Shown here: positions 24,087 to 58,739 of the stretch, in pieces
Numbering within the stretch: the stretch's first letter is position 1
Layout of the letters: every line of letters starts with the position of its first letter
Sequence record: PP456877.1
Length of the DNA: 64,000 bases
Strand: one strand, 5' to 3'
Notes under the pieces: generated by a model
What the model was told of the DNA's origin: nothing
Database searches by the model: none
Seen by the model: the letters and a program-made list of their open reading frames with translations, nothing else
Made by a program: the position numbers and the translations under genes

Positions 24087-27000
24087 TTAAATAACAGCAC
24101 CTTTGGAAACTATCCAGTTAGTACCATCCCATAAGAGGGTAAGAACTGTTTTAGTATCACCTAGGTCATCTACTATTACTGGAGTACCATTGTTCCATTG
24201 TAACACTGCACTAGACAGTGTTGGCATAGCTACCTTACCAAGCAATACAAGAACAGCTGTGATCATGCGATCAACAGGTCCATTCTCTAGTGTAATGGTT
24301 TGGTTAGCAGCAGTTTGAACCCTATAGCACTGCTGGTTAGCAGGTGTTATAGTCAGAGCTGTACCAGTGAATGTACTTGATTTTAGGCTATATGCATCGA
24401 ATGATTTATCTAGCTTCTTCCAAGTAATATTAGTACCAGTACGGCTACGTAGCCAATCACCATCAGCGGTTACATCATTATTCGGACCTTGGAATAGAGT
24501 CCATGATTTAGCCGCAGCATTACGTAGGAATAGTTGTCCACTAGTAGCATCAGCTTGATCAACTATAATAGTTACAGGTGTCCATTTAGAACCACTAGCT
24601 GTTTTCTCACGTACATAGTTAGTGCCATTAGCACCTTCACTAGGTACTTCACCAATAACTGCGGCTGGTACAGCTACCCATTCACCATTTTGCATACCCA
24701 TTAGAGTATCATCGGTTTGCAGAGGTGCTACATCAACCCAGTTACCAGCTACACGACCTTGAGGCTTAGTAGCTTGTGCAGTATCGCGTACTACATCTGA
24801 AGGAATTTCTGGGAATGTAATGGTAGCCCATTCAGTTTCACCCCCTGCAATACCTTTACGAACGTATTGTGCATTAACAACTGGACTAGGTACAGCATCA
24901 ATGGCAGGTGTTGGTAATTCAATAGCAGTCCATTCAACAGCCCCGTCAGCGGTTGCTTTACGGCGACCATAGAAGACACCTACTTCAGCATCTACCACCT
25001 CATCAACAGGTAGTTCAGTCCAACCGAGTTTGTACCGAACCATTTTCTTATCGACATCTTCTGGATCGACTTCACTAACTGGAACTGACATTAATTTGTA
25101 GAATACAACCCAGTTAGCATCTTTATACCAAACGGTACCAGTTTTGTCGATACACCAGTCACCACGATTACCATCGATAGAAGTGGGTGCAGTTTGACCT
25201 TCAGGTAGAATTACCCAAGAGGATCCACGTTCACCTTTCTGACCGGTTTTACCAGGGATACCTGGAACACCTTGTTTGCCCTCAGGACCTTCAGGACCCT
25301 GCGGACCCATGGCTAAGACACCTAGGCTTTCCCAAGTAAATGTACCTTCAGTATCGATACTTACAAATACTTCTACTTGTCCTTCAGTATTGGTGCGAAT
25401 GGCAATACCTTTACCTACGTTATCAGCAGATGCTACTGGTTTACCAGCATCATCACCAACATAGATAATTAATAGACCACCACCTTGTTTACCTTCAGGA
25501 CCTTGTGGGCCTTCGACACCCTGGATACCCTGCTCACCATTTAGATTAATTGGGCCGATATAGCCATCAATTTCCTGACCTTGGTAAGTATAGAGCATTG
25601 TACCTTCGTTAGTTTCAACCCAGTATGAATCACCAGTTACTAAGTCAGGATCAGTGTCTTTCTTTGGTAGTTGTGAAGCATCGGTTAAAACACCTTTAAT
25701 GTTTAAACCTTCACCCGGTTTACCTTGCGGACCTGCCATAATACCAATGCTAGTCCAGCGACTACCGTCCATGTTAACAAATACTTCGCCCGTGGACTTA
25801 ACAGTATATGCTTTCCATTGGTTATCGGCAAGTGCTTCTGGTGGGGTATCTTCAGGAGTGTCAATCGCTGCGATGATCTGGATAGGTTCACCAGCGGGAC
25901 CTTGTGGGCCTTCTGGTCCCTCGGGTCCTTCTGGTCCCTGATCACCGTCTTTACCAGGTGCGCCATCTTCACCTTTAGGACCTCGATGTGTACCACTATT
26001 TACCCAATTACCATCTATCTTAACAAATAAGGTAGATGTGTCTTGTGTGAAGTACGCTGCCTGATCAGGAGCATCTGCCGGCAGGGCTGCCTCATTGGCA
26101 ACAGCACCAGTAATAACTACGTTCTTACCATGTAGACTGATTAACCATTCACCCTCAGTACCAGTGAAGCCATTGTCCAATGCTACTTGGAAAGCCGATT
26201 TACCTTGTGCCCCTGGTTCACCAGGTAGACCTTGTTCGCCATCTTCACCTTGCGGACCTTCAGGGCCCTGCGGGCCACGGAATGAACCCATGGCTGTCCA
26301 TGAGATATCAACAGTCGGATCTTGGCCAGTCAGTACATAAACCGTATTGGTGGAACGTACTGAAACACCTTGGTATTGTTCTACACCAGTGGTGGTTAAT
26401 AGATCATCAGCAGTTTCAACTGCTTTAACTACTTCTAAGTTACGACCTTGTGGACCAGGTTCACCTTGTTTACCATCGGGACCCGGATCACCTGTATTAC
26501 CTGGTTTACCTTGTGGGCCCTCAGGGCCTTGGAAAGTACCTAGGTCTGACCATGCCCCTTTTACAAAGATGAATAGATGTTCTGGTTTACCAGCTTCCAT
26601 AGTAACTAAGTATGCTTCTGATTCTTTAGCTACAGATGGATCAGGTAAATCAGCTGGTGATGGTAGTGAATCCTTAATGGTAAACGGCATTGCTGGTTCA
26701 CCCTGAGGACCTTCAGGACCAATTTCACCATCTTTACCTTGCGGACCCTCAGGGCCCTCAGGTCCACGTTCACCCTGTGGTGTAACTGGGAACCAATCAT
26801 AGTCATCAATAGTTGGATTCTCTGGCGGATTATTACCTGAGATAAGCATCCACGCCCAGAGTTGATTATTCCATGAATAAGCATCTCCAGGTTTATTACT
26901 TTCAGTCTTAGGTAATTCTAAGTTATTAGGCCAACGACCACGGATAACTAGACCAGTACCATCTGGACCACGAAGTGAACCTGTTTCAACCCAACGACCT

Positions 27001-27368
27001 TTTACAGGGGGGTCTTCATTACCTAGCGGTGATTCCCACACCCATAGCCGATCTTCAACGAACCAAGCATCACCGACATTATGCGTATCTAATGGTTTAA
27101 TATCTTGTTCGAATGTTGCTAGATCAACATTAGCGATAATGTTAATAGCCGGACCAACTGGGCCAGGAGGGCCTTGTTCGCCATCTTTACCCGGCTGACC
27201 ATCTTCACCCTTTAATCCAGGTATAGTAACAGGATCAACGAAAGTAGTATTAAGACCCACCCCGGTAGAAACCGGGATGTGTCCATTAACTACAGAAGTG
27301 GGCTCATCAATTGATGATACCCGTTTGGGGAGTTCCCCGTTTACATAATCTTCAAATGCAGAAGCCAT
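24087..27368 (-). CDS. Collagen-like fibre protein (gp146-like)
   Basis: 1093 aa; about nine Gly-X-Y blocks alternating with Trp-containing globular units; TAATG coupling to the upstream gene. Confidence 0.85.
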   Translation of the reverse strand: MASAFEDYVNGELPKRVSSIDEPTSVVNGHIPVSTGVGLNTTFVDPVTIPGLKGEDGQPGKDGEQGPPGPVGPAINIIANVDLATFEQDIKPLDTHNVGDAWFVEDRLWVWESPLGNEDPPVKGRWVETGSLRGPDGTGLVIRGRWPNNLELPKTESNKPGDAYSWNNQLWAWMLISGNNPPENPTIDDYDWFPVTPQGERGPEGPEGPQGKDGEIGPEGPQGEPAMPFTIKDSLPSPADLPDPSVAKESEAYLVTMEAGKPEHLFIFVKGAWSDLGTFQGPEGPQGKPGNTGDPGPDGKQGEPGPQGRNLEVVKAVETADDLLTTTGVEQYQGVSVRSTNTVYVLTGQDPTVDISWTAMGSFRGPQGPEGPQGEDGEQGLPGEPGAQGKSAFQVALDNGFTGTEGEWLISLHGKNVVITGAVANEAALPADAPDQAAYFTQDTSTLFVKIDGNWVNSGTHRGPKGEDGAPGKDGDQGPEGPEGPEGPQGPAGEPIQIIAAIDTPEDTPPEALADNQWKAYTVKSTGEVFVNMDGSRWTSIGIMAGPQGKPGEGLNIKGVLTDASQLPKKDTDPDLVTGDSYWVETNEGTMLYTYQGQEIDGYIGPINLNGEQGIQGVEGPQGPEGKQGGGLLIIYVGDDAGKPVASADNVGKGIAIRTNTEGQVEVFVSIDTEGTFTWESLGVLAMGPQGPEGPEGKQGVPGIPGKTGQKGERGSSWVILPEGQTAPTSIDGNRGDWCIDKTGTVWYKDANWVVFYKLMSVPVSEVDPEDVDKKMVRYKLGWTELPVDEVVDAEVGVFYGRRKATADGAVEWTAIELPTPAIDAVPSPVVNAQYVRKGIAGGETEWATITFPEIPSDVVRDTAQATKPQGRVAGNWVDVAPLQTDDTLMGMQNGEWVAVPAAVIGEVPSEGANGTNYVREKTASGSKWTPVTIIVDQADATSGQLFLRNAAAKSWTLFQGPNNDVTADGDWLRSRTGTNITWKKLDKSFDAYSLKSSTFTGTALTITPANQQCYRVQTAANQTITLENGPVDRMITAVLVLLGKVAMPTLSSAVLQWNNGTPVIVDDLGDTKTVLTLLWDGTNWIVSKGAVI

Positions 27369-29737
27369 TATACTACTTCCTCAAGTTCGATTTTCATCAG
27401 TCCAGTGGTGTTGGACACAGCGTTTGCTGAGTCACAGTTATACCACTTATTGCCATCCTTGATGGTGTAGGTGTCAACTTGATTTGCATCATCCGCCTTA
27501 TAAGTGAAGTTTAAGCTACCAGTAGAACCTTTAGATAGGTTACTGCAACGTAGTTTACCAGTATTGGTTACTTCAGTACCAATATCAGTTTCACGGTTCG
27601 GCCAAGCAGCCACACTTAGAGTGCGGAATACAAATCCACCTAGTACATAAGTACCACCATTTACACTATTAGCTTCAACACCAGCTAAACCTTTTAGAAC
27701 CACACTGTTAAAATCGTAGGTTCCTTTAGGATCATCGTCATGTACTAGTAATGCACGTGTCCATACCTTACCAGTGGCATCAGATTTCCAATCCTCAGTA
27801 GCCCACTTACCGCCAGGCGCATTCATGGCCGGAGCTGCACTTAGTTTCTGAGTAGAGGTTAAAGTAATGACATGACTTTGTACTTGGGTTCCAAAGTTAC
27901 CACCTGAACGAAGGCGAGCAGCAGGGTAGGTAACCGTCGCAGTAGGTGCCGCATTTGCAATAGCCACAACAGCAGTAGCTGTAGCTACACTACCATTAGC
28001 TGCACGTTTAGCAGTAATTAATAGGTTATTAGTGCTGTCGTTATAAGTACCTGACTTATAAGTAACTACCTTAGCAATTTCTGCTTCATTTGCACTGGTT
28101 ATAGTAAGCTGATCATTTGGTGAGGAATAAACCACACTATCAGCATTAGATACCGTATTGGCTACAGTAGCAGTTTCACCTACTTTAATAGCACTTTGAC
28201 CAGACGGATAAGTTACTTGACCAATATTAACAACTGGGCGAAGATCGTTTAACTGCATAGTGTTAATTTTATCTTCGGAACCAGCATCACTGGAAGTAAA
28301 CCATTCTGACCATGATCCAGTTGATTTCTGAACACGTACACGGAAACCATATGCCTTAGTAGTATTACCACGATCAGCTACGTAAAGACCAGTAACCTCT
28401 AGTTCTTTAGTAGGTGCAACAGTACCACTACTTTCTTTCAGTGCACCAAAGTCAGCAATTTCGTATGCTACTATATTTTCATCAGTAACAACTTTAATTG
28501 CAACAAGGTCATCTTCTTTAAGTTCTATTTGACCTAACGGATAACCGCCAGTAAATACAGCACTAGTAATATTAGCGGGAGTATCGGCTAATACCTTAGT
28601 AGTGAATTTAGCCCCATCGGCGTGTTCTACAACAATATCAGCATAACCTTCAGTAGTAGGTGCACCAAGATCAATATCGGCGGTAGCAATCCACATAGGT
28701 GGATTAACGCCAGGAGTTACAACTGCATCTACGTTATTGATTTTAACACTAGGTACATAACTAGAATGTCCAGTTATTGCATCAACGATAACCCGAACAT
28801 TACTAGTAGTCGATAGGCATGACTGTACGCTGTGTCCATCAGGGGTACGCACAATACTACCTACGTTCTGACTGGGATCAGTTGCTTGTACATCTTTGAC
28901 GAATACACCGCCACTAATACCTTCGTTTTTAGGAAGGTTCTTAAGATCAACAATTGTTTCATCAACGCCTTCAACAATACGGATATTGCCGTCATTCTTG
29001 AATGCAATGTAATCAGTTAAACTACCAATCTGGAATTCACCATTGTCATAAATACGAATTTCAGACTCAGGTAATTCGGGTAATGCACCTTGCGTAGTGG
29101 GTGCAGAGGCGTTCTTTAGATAAGAATAACCTTCTGCCTCCATACGACCTTGTTCCATCATACGCTGAGGTACTTTATCACCAGCAGTTAAGTCGTCTTG
29201 ATTTAGACGCTTATCAAACAGGAAAGCAAAGTTATGGAAAGCAGCGTTGGATGATAATCCACCATTCTTACCAGTTACACGCAGTACATCTTTAACTGTA
29301 TAGCCTTGTTGATTTAAGAGTGTCTGGAGTAGTTCAGCAGTCATGGTTGCATGCAGTGATGTTAACCATTCCTGTTCAGTACCTTGGAAACCATTTTCCA
29401 CAGCTACTTCATATGCACTCTTACCAGCATCACCTTTAAGGGATGCTATAAACTCTTCTTCAGTACCAACGAAGCCTAGATCGACTGCGATTTGATAAGA
29501 AGATTTACCTTTAAGCGAATCAAGCCATTCGGTTTCAGTTCCCTGGAAACCATTTTTAACGGCAATCTCGTACGCACTAAGACCGGGTGCCCCAGTCTGT
29601 AGTTTTGACAGCAGAAACTTATAGTTATCGACTTGACCAGCTGCATCGGTATGAATTAATTCAATATACTCGCTATCATTAAGAGTAGCTAGATCCGGCA
29701 GTTGACTGATCTTGCCTTTGTCTGTAGCATTTGCCAT
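27368..29737 (-). CDS. Fibre/structural protein (gp145-like)
   Basis: 789 aa; N-terminal KISQLP module, three GxSAYExAVxxGFxGTExEWL repeats, beta-rich C-terminal half. Confidence 0.8.
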   Translation of the reverse strand: MANATDKGKISQLPDLATLNDSEYIELIHTDAAGQVDNYKFLLSKLQTGAPGLSAYEIAVKNGFQGTETEWLDSLKGKSSYQIAVDLGFVGTEEEFIASLKGDAGKSAYEVAVENGFQGTEQEWLTSLHATMTAELLQTLLNQQGYTVKDVLRVTGKNGGLSSNAAFHNFAFLFDKRLNQDDLTAGDKVPQRMMEQGRMEAEGYSYLKNASAPTTQGALPELPESEIRIYDNGEFQIGSLTDYIAFKNDGNIRIVEGVDETIVDLKNLPKNEGISGGVFVKDVQATDPSQNVGSIVRTPDGHSVQSCLSTTSNVRVIVDAITGHSSYVPSVKINNVDAVVTPGVNPPMWIATADIDLGAPTTEGYADIVVEHADGAKFTTKVLADTPANITSAVFTGGYPLGQIELKEDDLVAIKVVTDENIVAYEIADFGALKESSGTVAPTKELEVTGLYVADRGNTTKAYGFRVRVQKSTGSWSEWFTSSDAGSEDKINTMQLNDLRPVVNIGQVTYPSGQSAIKVGETATVANTVSNADSVVYSSPNDQLTITSANEAEIAKVVTYKSGTYNDSTNNLLITAKRAANGSVATATAVVAIANAAPTATVTYPAARLRSGGNFGTQVQSHVITLTSTQKLSAAPAMNAPGGKWATEDWKSDATGKVWTRALLVHDDDPKGTYDFNSVVLKGLAGVEANSVNGGTYVLGGFVFRTLSVAAWPNRETDIGTEVTNTGKLRCSNLSKGSTGSLNFTYKADDANQVDTYTIKDGNKWYNCDSANAVSNTTGLMKIELEEVV

Positions 29738-29942: not shown

Positions 29943-30764
<822 letters not shown>

Positions 30765-30786: not shown

Positions 30787-31320
30787 TTAACTTTCTAGAT
30801 AACGGATTTGACCATTTTCTAGATAACGTGCTGCGCCATTCTCTAATAGCCGGATAGTATCTGATGTATCATCAATACGTTGAATTAGTATATTACATTC
30901 GCCATAGTAAGCATAACTACTCGACATAGCTACTATCGTGTATGGAACAACATCCGTAGTTGCATTGATTGGTGTTGTATCAAATGAAACATCATCTGGT
31001 CCAAGCTTCCAACCCCGTGAACGGTTGATTTCTTCAGCAATTGCTTTAGGTGTTAAAGTACCAACTATCTTAAGGATAGATCCTTCACCAATAGCTCGTG
31101 GATCAGCAAAATCTAACCGACGGTAAGTTAACATGTACTTAATGTCAGTAGTAATGTCGATCATTTCAATAAATGTACGTCCAGGCTCAATCGTGGTTGG
31201 ACTAAAAAACATATCTTCAAATGTAACTGTTTCTGGTTTGAAGTTTATTTTTAAATCATCCCGCGCAAGTTTTACTAGCGCGTCCCTCGATGCCATGTCA
31301 TACGGAAAGATATCCTGCAT
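30787..31320 (-). CDS. Virion protein with C-terminal RxLENG triple repeat (gp143-like)
   Basis: 177 aa; TYRRLDF motif; ends IRLLENGAARYLENGQIRYLES. Confidence 0.8.
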   Translation of the reverse strand: MQDIFPYDMASRDALVKLARDDLKINFKPETVTFEDMFFSPTTIEPGRTFIEMIDITTDIKYMLTYRRLDFADPRAIGEGSILKIVGTLTPKAIAEEINRSRGWKLGPDDVSFDTTPINATTDVVPYTIVAMSSSYAYYGECNILIQRIDDTSDTIRLLENGAARYLENGQIRYLES

Positions 31321-48860: not shown

Positions 48861-49736
<876 letters not shown>

Positions 49737-49744
49737 GGTGTGTA

Positions 49745-50188
49745 ATGGCTGATACAAGAGCTGAATTAGTAGCTGCTTGGAATGTGGCTAATAAACCTAA
49801 AGATAATAATGGTAAGCCTAGGGATTTAACTGTTGATGATGTTGAATTTATAGGGACTGATACATTCTTAGCAACTGGTACAAATGCCAAAACAACAATG
49901 AGAGCGAAGACCAGTTCACTTTATTTTAAAGGTGAGACAGTTATTTACTTTAATAGACGCTCTTTACCAGAGTACTGTCTTGGTATAAAAGTACCGGGTA
50001 AACCAACTGACTATACTGATAATTTAGAAGTAGCTGAAAAATTAAGAGATGTTTACGGTATTCCATTTATTATAGATGAGATACAACCGCAACCTATTAC
50101 TGGGAATACGGTTACGATACATCCATACTTTAATAACTTGTCGTGGATACCAACAATACCAGTAACTCTTGAATTTGAAAGTAGTTAA
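49745..50188 (+). CDS. Virion structural protein (gp126-like)
   Basis: 147 aa; YFNRRSL motif. Confidence 0.72.
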   Translation: MADTRAELVAAWNVANKPKDNNGKPRDLTVDDVEFIGTDTFLATGTNAKTTMRAKTSSLYFKGETVIYFNRRSLPEYCLGIKVPGKPTDYTDNLEVAEKLRDVYGIPFIIDEIQPQPITGNTVTIHPYFNNLSWIPTIPVTLEFESS

Positions 50189-56340: not shown

Positions 56341-56376
56341 CTGTAATATAGATCTTAAACTTTTTTTAATGTAATA
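56341..56376 (-). promoter_or_regulatory. phiKZ-type early promoter for the gp121-gp124 block
   Basis: TATATTAC motif; 35/36 identical to 4634-4669. Confidence 0.8.
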
Positions 56377-56379
56377 CAA

Positions 56380-56410
56380 CATAAAGCCCTCCCCGAAGGG
56401 AGGGCCTATG
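56380..56410 (-). terminator. Capsid operon terminator
   Basis: Minus strand reads GCCCTCCC-ttcg-GGGAGGGC-tTTATG. Confidence 0.82.
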
Positions 56411-56414
56411 TCTG

Positions 56415-56495
56415 TTACTATTCTAACTTCCGGGCATTACCGTCTTCCAAATAACGGATAGTCCCATTTTCTAGATAACGGTAACCCTTTCCAGC
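56415..56495 (-). other. Putative UGA-readthrough extension of the major capsid protein (25 codons, then UAG UAA)
   Basis: In frame after TGA at 56496-56498: AGKGYRYLENGTIRYLEDGNARKLE**. Confidence 0.7.
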
Positions 56496-58739
56496 TCACG
56501 GCTTAAGATCAGCAAGCTTACCGTTGAACTGAGTTTCACCCATGACTTTCTGGAAGCCAGTGATCTTGAACTCTAGCGCGAACGGAATGTTGTTGACGTG
56601 TAGGTTGAACGGAATGGCCGCGATTTCGCGAGTAACCTGGTGACCACCACGAGTGATCGGTAGGTCAGCGATAACAGTAGATACGTAGAAGAACTGACCC
56701 CAGGAGAGGATGTCGTTTTCTTGTTGTACTGCGCGGGTCGGAATTACAACTAGCTTACCATCAAATAGCTGGTTGTTGGTGGAAACGATATCGTACTTGA
56801 GATAAGCACCTAGAGTACGGTCGTCACCTTTAGTCATTAGATAGTTAGCAATCTCTTTGTCGGAGCAGAAGAGATACATCGGAGTTTCATCCTGGTTACC
56901 GGAGATAACACGGAAGGCAGCTTCAATGTTGGAATCACGGTGAGCCGGGAATAGCTCAGCTTTAACACAGTTTAGGATCGCAGCGCAAACGTCGTCCCAA
57001 CGATCTTTAGACTTGATGGTGTCGATGACTTTCTCAAGATCTAGTTCTTTGTAACGATAGGTCGGACGCATTACAGCGGATAGTGCACCTTCGATGATAC
57101 CAAACTTCGGACGGTTGTAACCATTGTGTACAACTTCACGTAGTTGAGCAAGGTAGTTAAGCATGCGCTTAACAGCGTTGTTGCTGTTACGGATGTTGGT
57201 GTTAACAGTTAGAGCTTTAACAACCTCACCCGGACCTTCATCGGTCATGGTGTCCATCGGTAGAGTTACAGGAGCGTGCATCGGGATCGGATGACGGAAC
57301 TGTAGCGCACGGGTCTGTAGTAGGTGACCACGCTGACGACGGTTAGTGTTGGTGAAGCGAGTGTCTAGTTCGAAACCGATAACCGCTAGGTCAGTTAGCT
57401 GATCTAGAATAGCTTTAACAGCCGGGTCAGCATTATCCATTACCTGACCATCTTCGTTTAGAACTTTATCGACGTAAGTGTCGGTAGCACCAAACTTAGA
57501 ATCGCCTTTGGATAGGCTGATTGTACCACCAAAACCAACGCTTAGACGTAGGCTTAGTTTAGCGGTCTTAAGATCATTGATAACACCGTCAGCTGAACCA
57601 TCGATGAAAGTGGTATCGCCACTAACAACTAGATCGTCGCTATCGAAACGGATAACTGCGTTCCGGGTATCACCAACTAGATCGGGCTGGAACACAGCGC
57701 GAGGTAGACGGTCAACCTTGAACTTAACAACTTTACCGCCGAGTAGAACGAATAGGTTCTTTAGACGACCAGCCGGATCAATGGTGTCAGAAACTTCAAG
57801 CATGCCACGCTGAATGAGTAGGTTAGCATTGGAGTTACCCATTAGATCAAGACGTACGTTCGCTTTTAGCGGAGCAGTAGTGATAGTTAGGTTCTGCTCG
57901 TTCTTGATGGTGTACGGAGGAACAAGAGCCGGGTCTACGAAGAAGTCAGCATTGGAACCAGCCGGATCTAGGGCAGGAATTAGTGCAATGCTTTCGTCGT
58001 CGAGGATGGAAGGATCACGATAGGCTTCTACCATGTTCACTTCTTCGTTATCCATCTTAACGCCGGATACTTCGTGGTAAACGTCTTTCATTACAGCGAT
58101 GTAAGGAAGAACCTGAACAACACCACCTTCAATCGGGTTGATAACGGTGGTCGGATAGATACGCTCAGCGAATTCATCCTGACGGCTAGCAGCTAGGTTA
58201 TAACCAATAGTTACAACACGGAAATCACGCTGTGACTTCTCGTTATAGTTCTCTAGGCCAACACCATTTTCGAATACTTGAATGCCACCAGCAGGGCCAT
58301 TGAACTGATGCTGTACAACCTTAACATGATCTTCATTAGAAGCTTTAGCTTTGGTAATACCACGTAGTGCACGGATATATTTAGTTTCATCAGCACAGGC
58401 GATAGCAGCCATGGTAGCAGCAGTGATTTGGTTCTCACGGACACGTTCTTCACGAGCACGTACTTGAGGATCACTGGAACTTACTCGTTCGAAACCATAG
58501 TCGTTAACGAGCATTTGCATTTTGTTATAAATTGCAGCGGCATCTTGAATGTCGGTAGCTTGCACGGTACCGAAGTTTTCATGTGAAATGCTGCTAATAA
58601 GGGAACGACCTTGACTAACAACGCTGTCATTTAGACCAATTTCACTTTCTAGGCGGCCAATGAAATCTTCCATTGAGAAGACTTCGTAATTCTTTTCGCC
58701 TTTGTGTTTAAACAGTTCTCTTAGGGCATGTACGCTCAT
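56496..58739 (-). CDS. gp120: Major capsid protein (phiKZ gp120)
   Basis: 747 aa; MSVHALRELFKHKGEKNYEVFSME...VGLENYNEK; strong codon bias; matches the recalled phiKZ capsid protein. Confidence 0.95.
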   Translation of the reverse strand: MSVHALRELFKHKGEKNYEVFSMEDFIGRLESEIGLNDSVVSQGRSLISSISHENFGTVQATDIQDAAAIYNKMQMLVNDYGFERVSSSDPQVRAREERVRENQITAATMAAIACADETKYIRALRGITKAKASNEDHVKVVQHQFNGPAGGIQVFENGVGLENYNEKSQRDFRVVTIGYNLAASRQDEFAERIYPTTVINPIEGGVVQVLPYIAVMKDVYHEVSGVKMDNEEVNMVEAYRDPSILDDESIALIPALDPAGSNADFFVDPALVPPYTIKNEQNLTITTAPLKANVRLDLMGNSNANLLIQRGMLEVSDTIDPAGRLKNLFVLLGGKVVKFKVDRLPRAVFQPDLVGDTRNAVIRFDSDDLVVSGDTTFIDGSADGVINDLKTAKLSLRLSVGFGGTISLSKGDSKFGATDTYVDKVLNEDGQVMDNADPAVKAILDQLTDLAVIGFELDTRFTNTNRRQRGHLLQTRALQFRHPIPMHAPVTLPMDTMTDEGPGEVVKALTVNTNIRNSNNAVKRMLNYLAQLREVVHNGYNRPKFGIIEGALSAVMRPTYRYKELDLEKVIDTIKSKDRWDDVCAAILNCVKAELFPAHRDSNIEAAFRVISGNQDETPMYLFCSDKEIANYLMTKGDDRTLGAYLKYDIVSTNNQLFDGKLVVIPTRAVQQENDILSWGQFFYVSTVIADLPITRGGHQVTREIAAIPFNLHVNNIPFALEFKITGFQKVMGETQFNGKLADLKP

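Follow-up and report, generated by a model that had tools for sequence, protein, structure and literature searches.

We analysed a 64,000-nucleotide (nt) stretch of sequence record PP456877.1 (the window), in which the C-terminus of the gene product gp143 and the region directly behind the stop codon of the major capsid gene specify related short repeat peptides, referred to here as the tag. The window consists of phiKZ-type Pseudomonas jumbo phage DNA in reverse orientation; it is ~98-99% identical to phiKZ, and phage KEN49 shows 100% identity to it over the stretch tested. As the sequence is of the phiKZ type, phiKZ gp numbers can be applied to its genes. The gp143 gene is located at 30787..31320 on the minus strand (177 amino acids plus stop), as defined by its open reading frame (ORF), its translation and a match to phrog_2935 (E 9e-46). 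The protein ends in RLLENGAARYLENGQIRYLES, with residues R157-S177 (30790..30852, minus strand) forming three R-x-L-E-N-G-x-x octads, the last of which is truncated by the C-terminus. The gene for the major capsid protein gp120 is found at 56496..58739, again on the minus strand (747 amino acids plus a TGA stop), and its product corresponds in length and sequence family to gp120 in PDB entry 8y6v. The TGA (56496..56498, minus strand), which we propose as a readthrough site, is followed in frame by 25 codons (56421..56495, minus strand) for a Gly-rich linker (AGKG) and three further octads, AGKGYRYLENGTIRYLEDGNARKLE. A double stop, TAG TAA (56415..56420, minus strand), closes this extension, and the intrinsic terminator hairpin of the capsid transcript is located just 3' of it (56384..56407, minus strand). 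Being upstream of the terminator, the extension is thus part of the capsid mRNA. Its 3' end reads K-L-E, TAG, TAA in the window (56415-56423); phiKZ and PA7 (L006, L113) have an extra Glu codon in place of TAG. Their extension is therefore one Glu longer, and the last residue is thus dispensable.

We compared the two tags with each other. Aligned from the first arginine, the 20-residue peptides are identical at 13/20 positions and share an 8-residue period, which bears out the preliminary description of this DNA, where a triple RxLENG repeat at the gp143 C-terminus had been matched to a capsid readthrough peptide. The exact 17-nt DNA match reported there at 30812 and 56464 is likewise present: the 17-mer CCATTTTCTAGATAACG occurs at 30812..30828, covering codons R-Y-L-E-N-G of gp143 octad 2, and at 56464..56480, covering codons R-Y-L-E-N-G of extension octad 1, and nowhere else in the window (expected number 0.04, even allowing 2 mismatches). 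A degenerate DNA pattern for two octads gave 4 overlapping matches, at the gp143 and capsid loci only, versus 0.00 in 100 shuffles. A six-frame search with the regular expression R.LE[ND]G, suggested in the same description, returned only the two known loci, both in the window and in the whole 280-kilobase (kb) phiKZ genome. Eight of the 13 identities fall on fixed R/E/G positions of the motif. At the 12 variable positions, the two tags agree on average at 3.0 within a genome versus 3.08 between genomes (ten genomes, permutation P 0.69). The likeness of the phiKZ tags is thus mostly that of a shared motif, since their variable positions are no closer within than between genomes. The 17-nt identity is a detail of the phiKZ lineage and reflects shared codons or else local gene conversion. 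Among cultured phages, a gp143 homologue is found in 69 Pseudomonas phage records, and the capsid 3' region also in 69; these counts, like the presence of exactly two tags in phiKZ, would favor a joint action of the two.

We investigated whether the sequence behind the capsid stop behaves as protein-coding DNA, using capsid 3' ends from 25 loci, which represent at least seven genera and 21 distinct extension sequences, with capsid identities down to 61%. The loci comprise the window, phiKZ/PA7, phiPA3, 201phi2-1, PS119XW, HPP-Temi, Phabio, Psa21, Noxifer and uncultured relatives from IMG/VR. TGA serves as capsid stop in 25/25 loci and in 21/21 distinct sequences, with TGA ending ~21% of phiKZ ORFs; the extension itself is closed by a variable stop (13 TAA, 4 TGA, 4 TAG). 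Frame 0 is open for 25-30 codons after the capsid stop in all 21 distinct sequences, and stops are present in frame +1 in 19/21 and in frame +2 in 18/21. A ribosomal frameshift of the T7 10B type was rejected on these grounds, as the extension is in frame 0 and the other two frames are closed in most sequences. All length differences between extensions are whole codons, with insertions and deletions (indels) in multiples of 3. The 'x' positions of the peptides show strong divergence, and R, E and G are fixed or almost fixed in their columns. The invariant columns draw on 2-4 synonymous codons, with Arg specified by CGN as well as AGR and Gly by every GGN codon. The pooled ratio of nonsynonymous to synonymous differences (pN/pS) is 0.63 (0.43 after Jukes-Cantor correction), versus 0.82 and 1.05 in the shifted frames. 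No conserved start codon was found inside the extension, which is conserved from the codon directly behind the stop onward. The terminator stem shows compensatory changes across 19 relatives. The tag is contained in none of 120 called capsid homologues, so that a sense codon in place of the stop does not occur among them. No suppressor tRNA is present in phiKZ, and the window contains no tRNA of any kind. A conserved TGA, an open frame, codon-wise indels, synonymous codon use and the lack of both an own start and a fused form together make up the signature expected of programmed low-level readthrough. Judged by its sequence, the extension appears to be a real coding segment, hidden from annotation and very probably translated, and UGA readthrough is the likely mechanism of its production. 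The hidden capsid extension named in the preliminary description thus gains strong support from comparative genomics.

The surroundings of the stop were then considered for signals that might govern its decoding. The base 3' of UGA is A in 14, G in 6, C in 1 and T in 0 of the 21 sequences, and the last capsid residue is Pro in 9/21, the remainder being Ala, Gly or Val. A non-T base after UGA and a Pro before the stop are reportedly weak-termination contexts in E. coli (Poole 1995; Hayes 2002), which we use as a lead only. Hairpins are predicted 10-20 nt past the UGA in most relatives, where RNAalifold finds a weak stem with a covariation term of only -1.4. These hairpins would be compatible with a post-stop stretch that is untranslated and conserved as RNA or DNA, be it a structure of the 3' untranslated region, a part of the terminator or a regulatory site, its likeness to gp143 being accidental. 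We regard this as very unlikely, because the amino-acid motif persists in spite of strongly divergent nucleotides (synonymous codon use, indels of whole codons, frame open in 21/21), and because the same peptide module occurs in hundreds of bona fide ORFs. In addition, the covariation term contrasts with clear covariation in the neighboring terminator, and an Rfam scan of the post-stop region returned no family at threshold, with sub-threshold matches driven by the terminator. The hairpins may instead be a by-product of the conserved Arg (CGN) and Asp-Gly (GAC-GGN) codons. The same explanation bears on a dedicated decoding of the UGA, as selenocysteine by means of a downstream hairpin or by another specific recoding event. 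Pseudomonas hosts have selenoprotein machinery, the UGA is strictly conserved, and the hairpin is located at roughly the distance at which bacterial selenocysteine insertion sequence elements act. Nevertheless, the hairpin sequence differs between two sub-clades in a way accounted for by codons of conserved residues, no Rfam family was matched, and nothing hints at a role for selenium in the capsid tail, so that we consider this scenario extremely improbable.

We compared the post-stop slot with that of further relatives. The distant chimalliviruses LucasX, RAY, DT01, RP31, pVa-21, SA002 and FBKp24 have no extension, and their capsid stop is mostly TAA. A range of arrangements is found in IMG/VR relatives whose capsid protein is 63-78% identical to that of L159 (L083). 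In L159, the capsid TGA is followed by the tag, and in L160, L164, L166 and L185 the capsid ORF is closed by TAA and lacks an extension. L163 (2143-2751) has a TGA followed by 203 in-frame codons, which start with a Big_2 Ig-like domain (E 4e-9); an ATG at codon 3 of this post-stop ORF makes a separate gene possible. In L169 (2158-2442), a TAA is followed by 95 in-frame codons that specify a Big_2 domain (E 5e-7) and then the tag at the end. The Big_2 profile has no match in the 25-residue extension of the window. These arrangements together show that the post-stop slot of the capsid gene is evolutionarily active among relatives. Two further observations concern this slot. The eight in-frame codons after the TAA of L185 (2086-2109) read A-S-R-L-R-L-E-P and possibly represent a decayed tag remnant in a lineage from which the extension was lost. 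In the Serratia phage PCH45 (L038, after position 1639), the capsid TGA is followed by 49 in-frame sense codons without the octad motif.

We next turn to gp143, the other carrier of the tag sequence in phiKZ. The tag is present in 52/52 full-length gp143 homologues, some of them from marine metagenomes and the most distant with 32% identity. Loss of the motif from gp143 orthologues, named beforehand as an outcome that would speak against a common docking tag, is therefore not observed. R157, E160, R165, E168 and R173 are invariant among the 52 homologues, and G162 and G170 are at least 90% conserved, so that the tag is conserved like the protein core. The body of gp143 (residues 1-155) shares its fold with the Pfam family DUF7941. 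gp143 itself scores 18.3 against a cut-off of 27 and covers profile positions ~1-155 of 276, and 4/6 homologues tested are above threshold (32-42 bits). It lacks the C-terminal 120 profile positions of this family and carries the tag instead. An AlphaFold2 (AF2) model of gp143 has a predicted local distance difference test score (pLDDT) of 89. Its sole significant PDB match in Foldseek is 9xqd_0, a 150-residue chain from the outer periphery of the phiKZ baseplate (E 5.6e-7, template modeling scores 0.59/0.68). Modeling has placed gp127 in the outer periphery of the baseplate (PMC13250141), and 9xqd_0 is thus probably gp127, as this DUF7941 member is located in the same region. gp139 was rejected as the protein behind 9xqd_0, since it belongs to DUF7208 and is unrelated to gp143. 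In the window, gp127 is encoded at 48864-49736 (plus strand; DUF7941 E 7e-28) and gp126 at 49745-50188 (plus strand; DUF7941 E 9e-10). Both are paralogues of the gp143 body and share its fold; among these three phiKZ copies of the adaptor fold, the tag is found on gp143 only. In BFVD, 88 proteins match the gp143 fold at E<=1e-3, mostly virion proteins of chimalliviruses. The fold is a much-duplicated N-terminal module there, in proteins of 150-1266 residues, some of which are named tail fibre or tail protein. For the tag itself, AF2 predicts three short strands or beta-bridges, each around an Arg and joined by L-E-(D/N)-G-x turns (pLDDT 74-85). The model suggests that the tag may form a small three-strand beta-meander with a row of arginines.

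A different role has been published for gp143. It was named a lysis regulator that shifts holin triggering by 10-15 min, advancing or blocking it according to the holin N-terminus, and the predicted holin contact is located in its first globular domain (PMC12894885). In a transposon insertion sequencing (TnSeq) study, five insertions were recovered in gp143 and zero in gp142, gp144, gp145 and gp146 (10.1101/2025.11.23.690004). The C-terminal repeats of gp143 are mentioned in neither report, and PMC12894885 mentions neither a virion association of gp143 nor a capsid copy of the tag. Both the window and the distant marine relative L060 have a spanin gene followed by a holin-family gene (phrog_14484), gp143 and the endolysin gene (gp144; 29943..30725 of the window, minus strand). 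gp143 is thus located within the lysis cassette beside the holin, as is expected of holin regulators, and the effect on timing comes from PMC12894885 only. In L060 (7959-13066), the kept gene order spanin, holin-family, gp143-like and endolysin continues into a collagen-like fibre gene. The preliminary description had treated gp143 as a virion surface. A location on the virion would fit its 'structural protein' label and its baseplate-adaptor fold, but the published role is that of a cytoplasmic, transposon-tolerant holin regulator.

We scanned IMG/VR with a degenerate DNA pattern for three octads, excluding low-complexity Arg/Glu repeats. The scan yielded at least 120 stretches, with 80 loci among the matches listed, to which the following statements on position and octad number apply. 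The tag is found at the very C-terminal end of ORFs that differ widely in size and at the N-terminus of long ORFs (L090, L098, L117, L051, L044) that encode proteins of 231-1092 amino acids. Behind the TGA of a capsid ORF of 740-760 codons, it occurs in chimallivirus contigs only (L083, L096, L113). The number of octads is always three. Carriers of the tag include a Phage_tail_2 tube protein, a Tail_P2_I baseplate protein, a Dit-like protein, tail proteins of 640-680 residues and baseplate-family proteins, one of them with a PASTA domain. No Pfam family covers the tag, and a tag profile searched against PDB sequences gave single-octad chance matches only, with no chain containing the tag. These findings together indicate that the tag is a real, portable terminal module of virion proteins in many unrelated phages, and a function as docking or display peptide is plausible. 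None of the matches listed has a second tag in its locus of up to 14 kb. A pairing of tags, with the N-terminal tag of a fibre binding to the C-terminal tag of a platform, was considered and discarded, as no locus up to 14 kb contains two tags. General tag-to-tag pairing is therefore unlikely.

How could such a module become part of the phiKZ capsid? In the mechanism we propose, three octads of the form R-x-(L/M)-E-(D/N)-G-x-x would act as a self-contained module, which many tailed phages place at the very end, C- or N-terminal, of their virion proteins. phiKZ-type Pseudomonas phages have exactly two copies, of which one is constitutive, at the gp143 C-terminus, and the other is specified by the 25-30 codons after the capsid UGA. 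Most ribosomes would terminate at the gp120 UGA, and a small fraction would read through, with the UGA decoded by a near-cognate tRNA of the host, which we invoke because the phage has no suppressor tRNA. These ribosomes would go on to translate the Gly-rich linker with its three octads until they reach the double stop TAG TAA, a short distance ahead of the terminator. The product would be a minor gp120 subunit with the tag on its C-terminal arm at the capsomer axis, where it may serve as a displayed plug or as a docking peptide for a partner. The C-terminal arm comprises residues 728-747 in the capsid structure solved at 3.5 Å; at the hexamer axis, six such arms build a helix bundle with a 9-Å pore, and in pentamers the arms touch the external protein gp244 (PMC11297242). 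An extension of the C-terminal arm would therefore begin on the capsomer axis, and the pentamer arrangement suggests that it would point outward. Six extensions per axis would crowd, which could explain the constant stop. The lack of any sense codon at this position also suggests that few tagged subunits are tolerated per capsid. We consider it moderately likely, reasoning from the sequence comparisons, that a minor capsid subunit made by programmed UGA readthrough displays the tag as a plug or docking peptide. The sequence, its conservation, its coding signature and the distribution of the tag are observed, and readthrough, the extended protein, its outward display and its docking are deduced from them. 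More tentatively, this subunit may be one case of a widespread 24-residue 'plug' that hangs fibres or accessories on capsids, tubes and baseplates, with phiKZ carrying it on the capsid and on gp143.

Several observations weigh against this proposal. Across the relatives, no readthrough-stimulating element is clearly conserved after the UGA, and in L169 the stop ahead of the Big_2 domain and tag is TAA, a poor readthrough codon. The ratio of nonsynonymous to synonymous substitution rates (dN/dS) of the extension is moderate overall, because 12/20 tag positions vary freely. Published capsid models stop at residue 747, and no extra density on the capsomer axis has been reported. Within the ten genomes compared, we found no co-evolution of the gp143 tag with the capsid tag. 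Four uncultured relatives combine a tagged gp143 with a capsid gene that ends in TAA and has no extension; as they keep the gp143 tag alone, the two tags need not act together. A partner of the tag is thus suggested neither by a second tag within 14 kb in other phages nor by co-variation. Finally, gp143 is reported as a cytoplasmic protein acting on the holin and is dispensable, and virion display of its tag is therefore hypothetical. The notion of a common docking tag, put forward in the preliminary description, thus stands in part: a portable terminal module of virion proteins fits docking or display, but the two phiKZ tags do not co-vary.

The same observations help to weigh other functions for the tag. 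It had been suggested that the tags on gp143, as a tail or baseplate protein, and on the readthrough capsid subunit recruit the same ligand, with the collagen-like fibres gp145 and gp146 as the best candidate. Both genes are located downstream of gp144 on the minus strand and encode collagen-repeat, fibre-type proteins: gp145 (27368..29737) matches PHROG families of collagen-like tail fibres and has orthologues in PS119XW-type phages and Noxifer, and gp146 (24087..27368) matches Pfam Collagen (E 4.7e-25) and phrog_3904, tail fiber. Their connection with gp143 is one of gene order: in 7/8 informative loci, which have enough DNA on the 3' side, a large collagen-like ORF of the same orientation follows the gp143-like gene, and in L070 (2798-4872) it begins 27 nt past the gp143-like stop with no endolysin between. 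A link to fibres would also be consistent with the use of the gp143 fold as N-terminal module of tail fibre and tail proteins in other chimalliviruses; gp143, gp145 and gp146 are not placed in the 2026 virion atlas. This gene order, however, ties gp143 equally to the holin and the endolysin, and other phages mostly show one tag near tail genes among the matches listed. gp145 and gp146 are without TnSeq insertions while gp143 tolerates them, and gp143 is therefore not their sole anchor. Taking into account also the four relatives with a tagged gp143 and no capsid extension, we find a shared gp145/gp146 ligand improbable. The link of gp143 to the lysis cassette could alternatively mean that its tag serves lysis control, with the capsid copy as a competitor for the cytoplasmic partner of the gp143 tag; capsid build-up would then feed back on lysis timing. 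Such feedback could make use of the effect of gp143 on holin triggering (PMC12894885), of the order spanin-holin-gp143-endolysin, kept even in the distant marine relative, and of the presence of exactly two tags in phiKZ. It is nonetheless highly unlikely in view of the tail and baseplate proteins unconnected with lysis that carry the tag in other phages, and of the relatives that have a tagged gp143 and no capsid copy.

An adhesive role would do without a dedicated partner protein: the tag could be an accessory adhesin that binds weakly to a polymer of the host surface and raises adsorption, like appended Ig-like domains. It is found in the positions of such domains, namely at the C-terminus of a tube protein, on baseplate proteins and, by recoding, on the capsid, and the post-stop slot of relatives holds a Big_2 domain, alone or followed by the tag. 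Accessory modules are usually non-essential, as is gp143. We still judge this function unlikely, since the tag is also N-terminal on long fibre-like proteins (L098, L117, L051, L090), which is normally the virion-fixed end, since 24 residues with a net negative charge are small for a glycan-binding site, and since the search of PDB sequences provided no structural precedent. We retain the minor readthrough subunit with a displayed plug or docking peptide as the working model for the capsid copy.

We compared this model with known systems. In the RNA phage Qbeta, the UGA of the coat gene is occasionally read through, giving rise to a minor extended coat subunit, A1, which is incorporated into the capsid and is never constitutively fused. 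The phiKZ capsid gene resembles this arrangement in its UGA end, its predicted C-terminal extension and the lack of a constitutive fusion. Qbeta is, however, a single-stranded RNA phage with a T=3 capsid and a folded extension of ~200 residues that is needed for infection, whereas phiKZ, a jumbo phage with 280 kb of double-stranded DNA (dsDNA), has an HK97-fold capsid of T=27 and a predicted extension of 25-30 residues. The tailed dsDNA phages T7 and T3 (gp10A/10B) and Lactobacillus phage A2 (gp5A/5B) make a minor, C-terminally extended major capsid protein through recoding near the 3' end of the capsid gene, and the proposed phiKZ subunit would be similar in this respect. These phages use a -1 frameshift, whereas the phiKZ extension is located in frame 0 behind a stop with the other frames closed. 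To our knowledge, readthrough of a major capsid protein would be the first case in a tailed dsDNA phage. Ig-like domains (Big_2, FN3, I-set) reportedly form additions to the capsid and tail-tube proteins of phages, in many cases through programmed recoding (Fraser et al. 2006). Tag and Ig-like accessory domains have similar carriers (tube, baseplate, capsid), and both would be located on the outside of some structural subunits, but the tag is a 24-residue repeat peptide without an Ig fold and is also found at N-termini. The octapeptide triple beta-helix of T4 gp5C and the fibritin foldon share with the tag an 8-residue period and the nature of a small terminal unit in fibrous virion proteins. 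A triple beta-helix of the gp5C type was nevertheless rejected: the tag has three octads rather than many, its consensus is R-x-L-E-D-G and not V-x-G, and the bridges in the AF2 monomer are those of an intrachain meander.

Near-atomic models of the capsid and of the whole virion have recently become available for phiKZ, which serves as the model of nucleus-forming jumbo phages. An extended capsid subunit is not mentioned in the annotation, the structures or the 2026 review. The literature searched, which includes the 2024 capsid paper, the 2026 atlas and that review and does not cover all journals, contains no mention of an extended gp120 or of the tag, and both the capsid extension and the tag are thus apparently unreported. 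Should the readthrough product exist, it would be a new virion component with capsomer axes as attachment points, would offer a naturally occurring and tolerated position at which a T=27 capsid could display molecules in low copy number, and would extend recoding of the Qbeta type to tailed dsDNA phages. The partner of the tag, once found, would explain an attachment principle used far beyond phiKZ. Our analysis also raises the question why gp143, a published lysis regulator, has a virion-type adaptor fold and a tag.

Some minor features of the region were noted. Record AF399011.1 labels gp145 and gp146, as well as the sheath protein gp29 and baseplate proteins, as 'structural head protein'; since it is given to sheath and baseplate proteins too, this label is useless for assigning proteins to the head. 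CTTTATG, and not a plain T-run, follows nearly all capsid terminators of the clade (window 56380-56385, minus strand; columns 160-168 of alignment A4). A promoter-like conserved box, TCTATATTAC, is found at 56343-56352 of the window (minus strand), ~30 nt past the capsid terminator and ahead of gp121, and the same box is present 3' of the terminator in phiPA3, PS119XW/HPP-Temi and Phabio.

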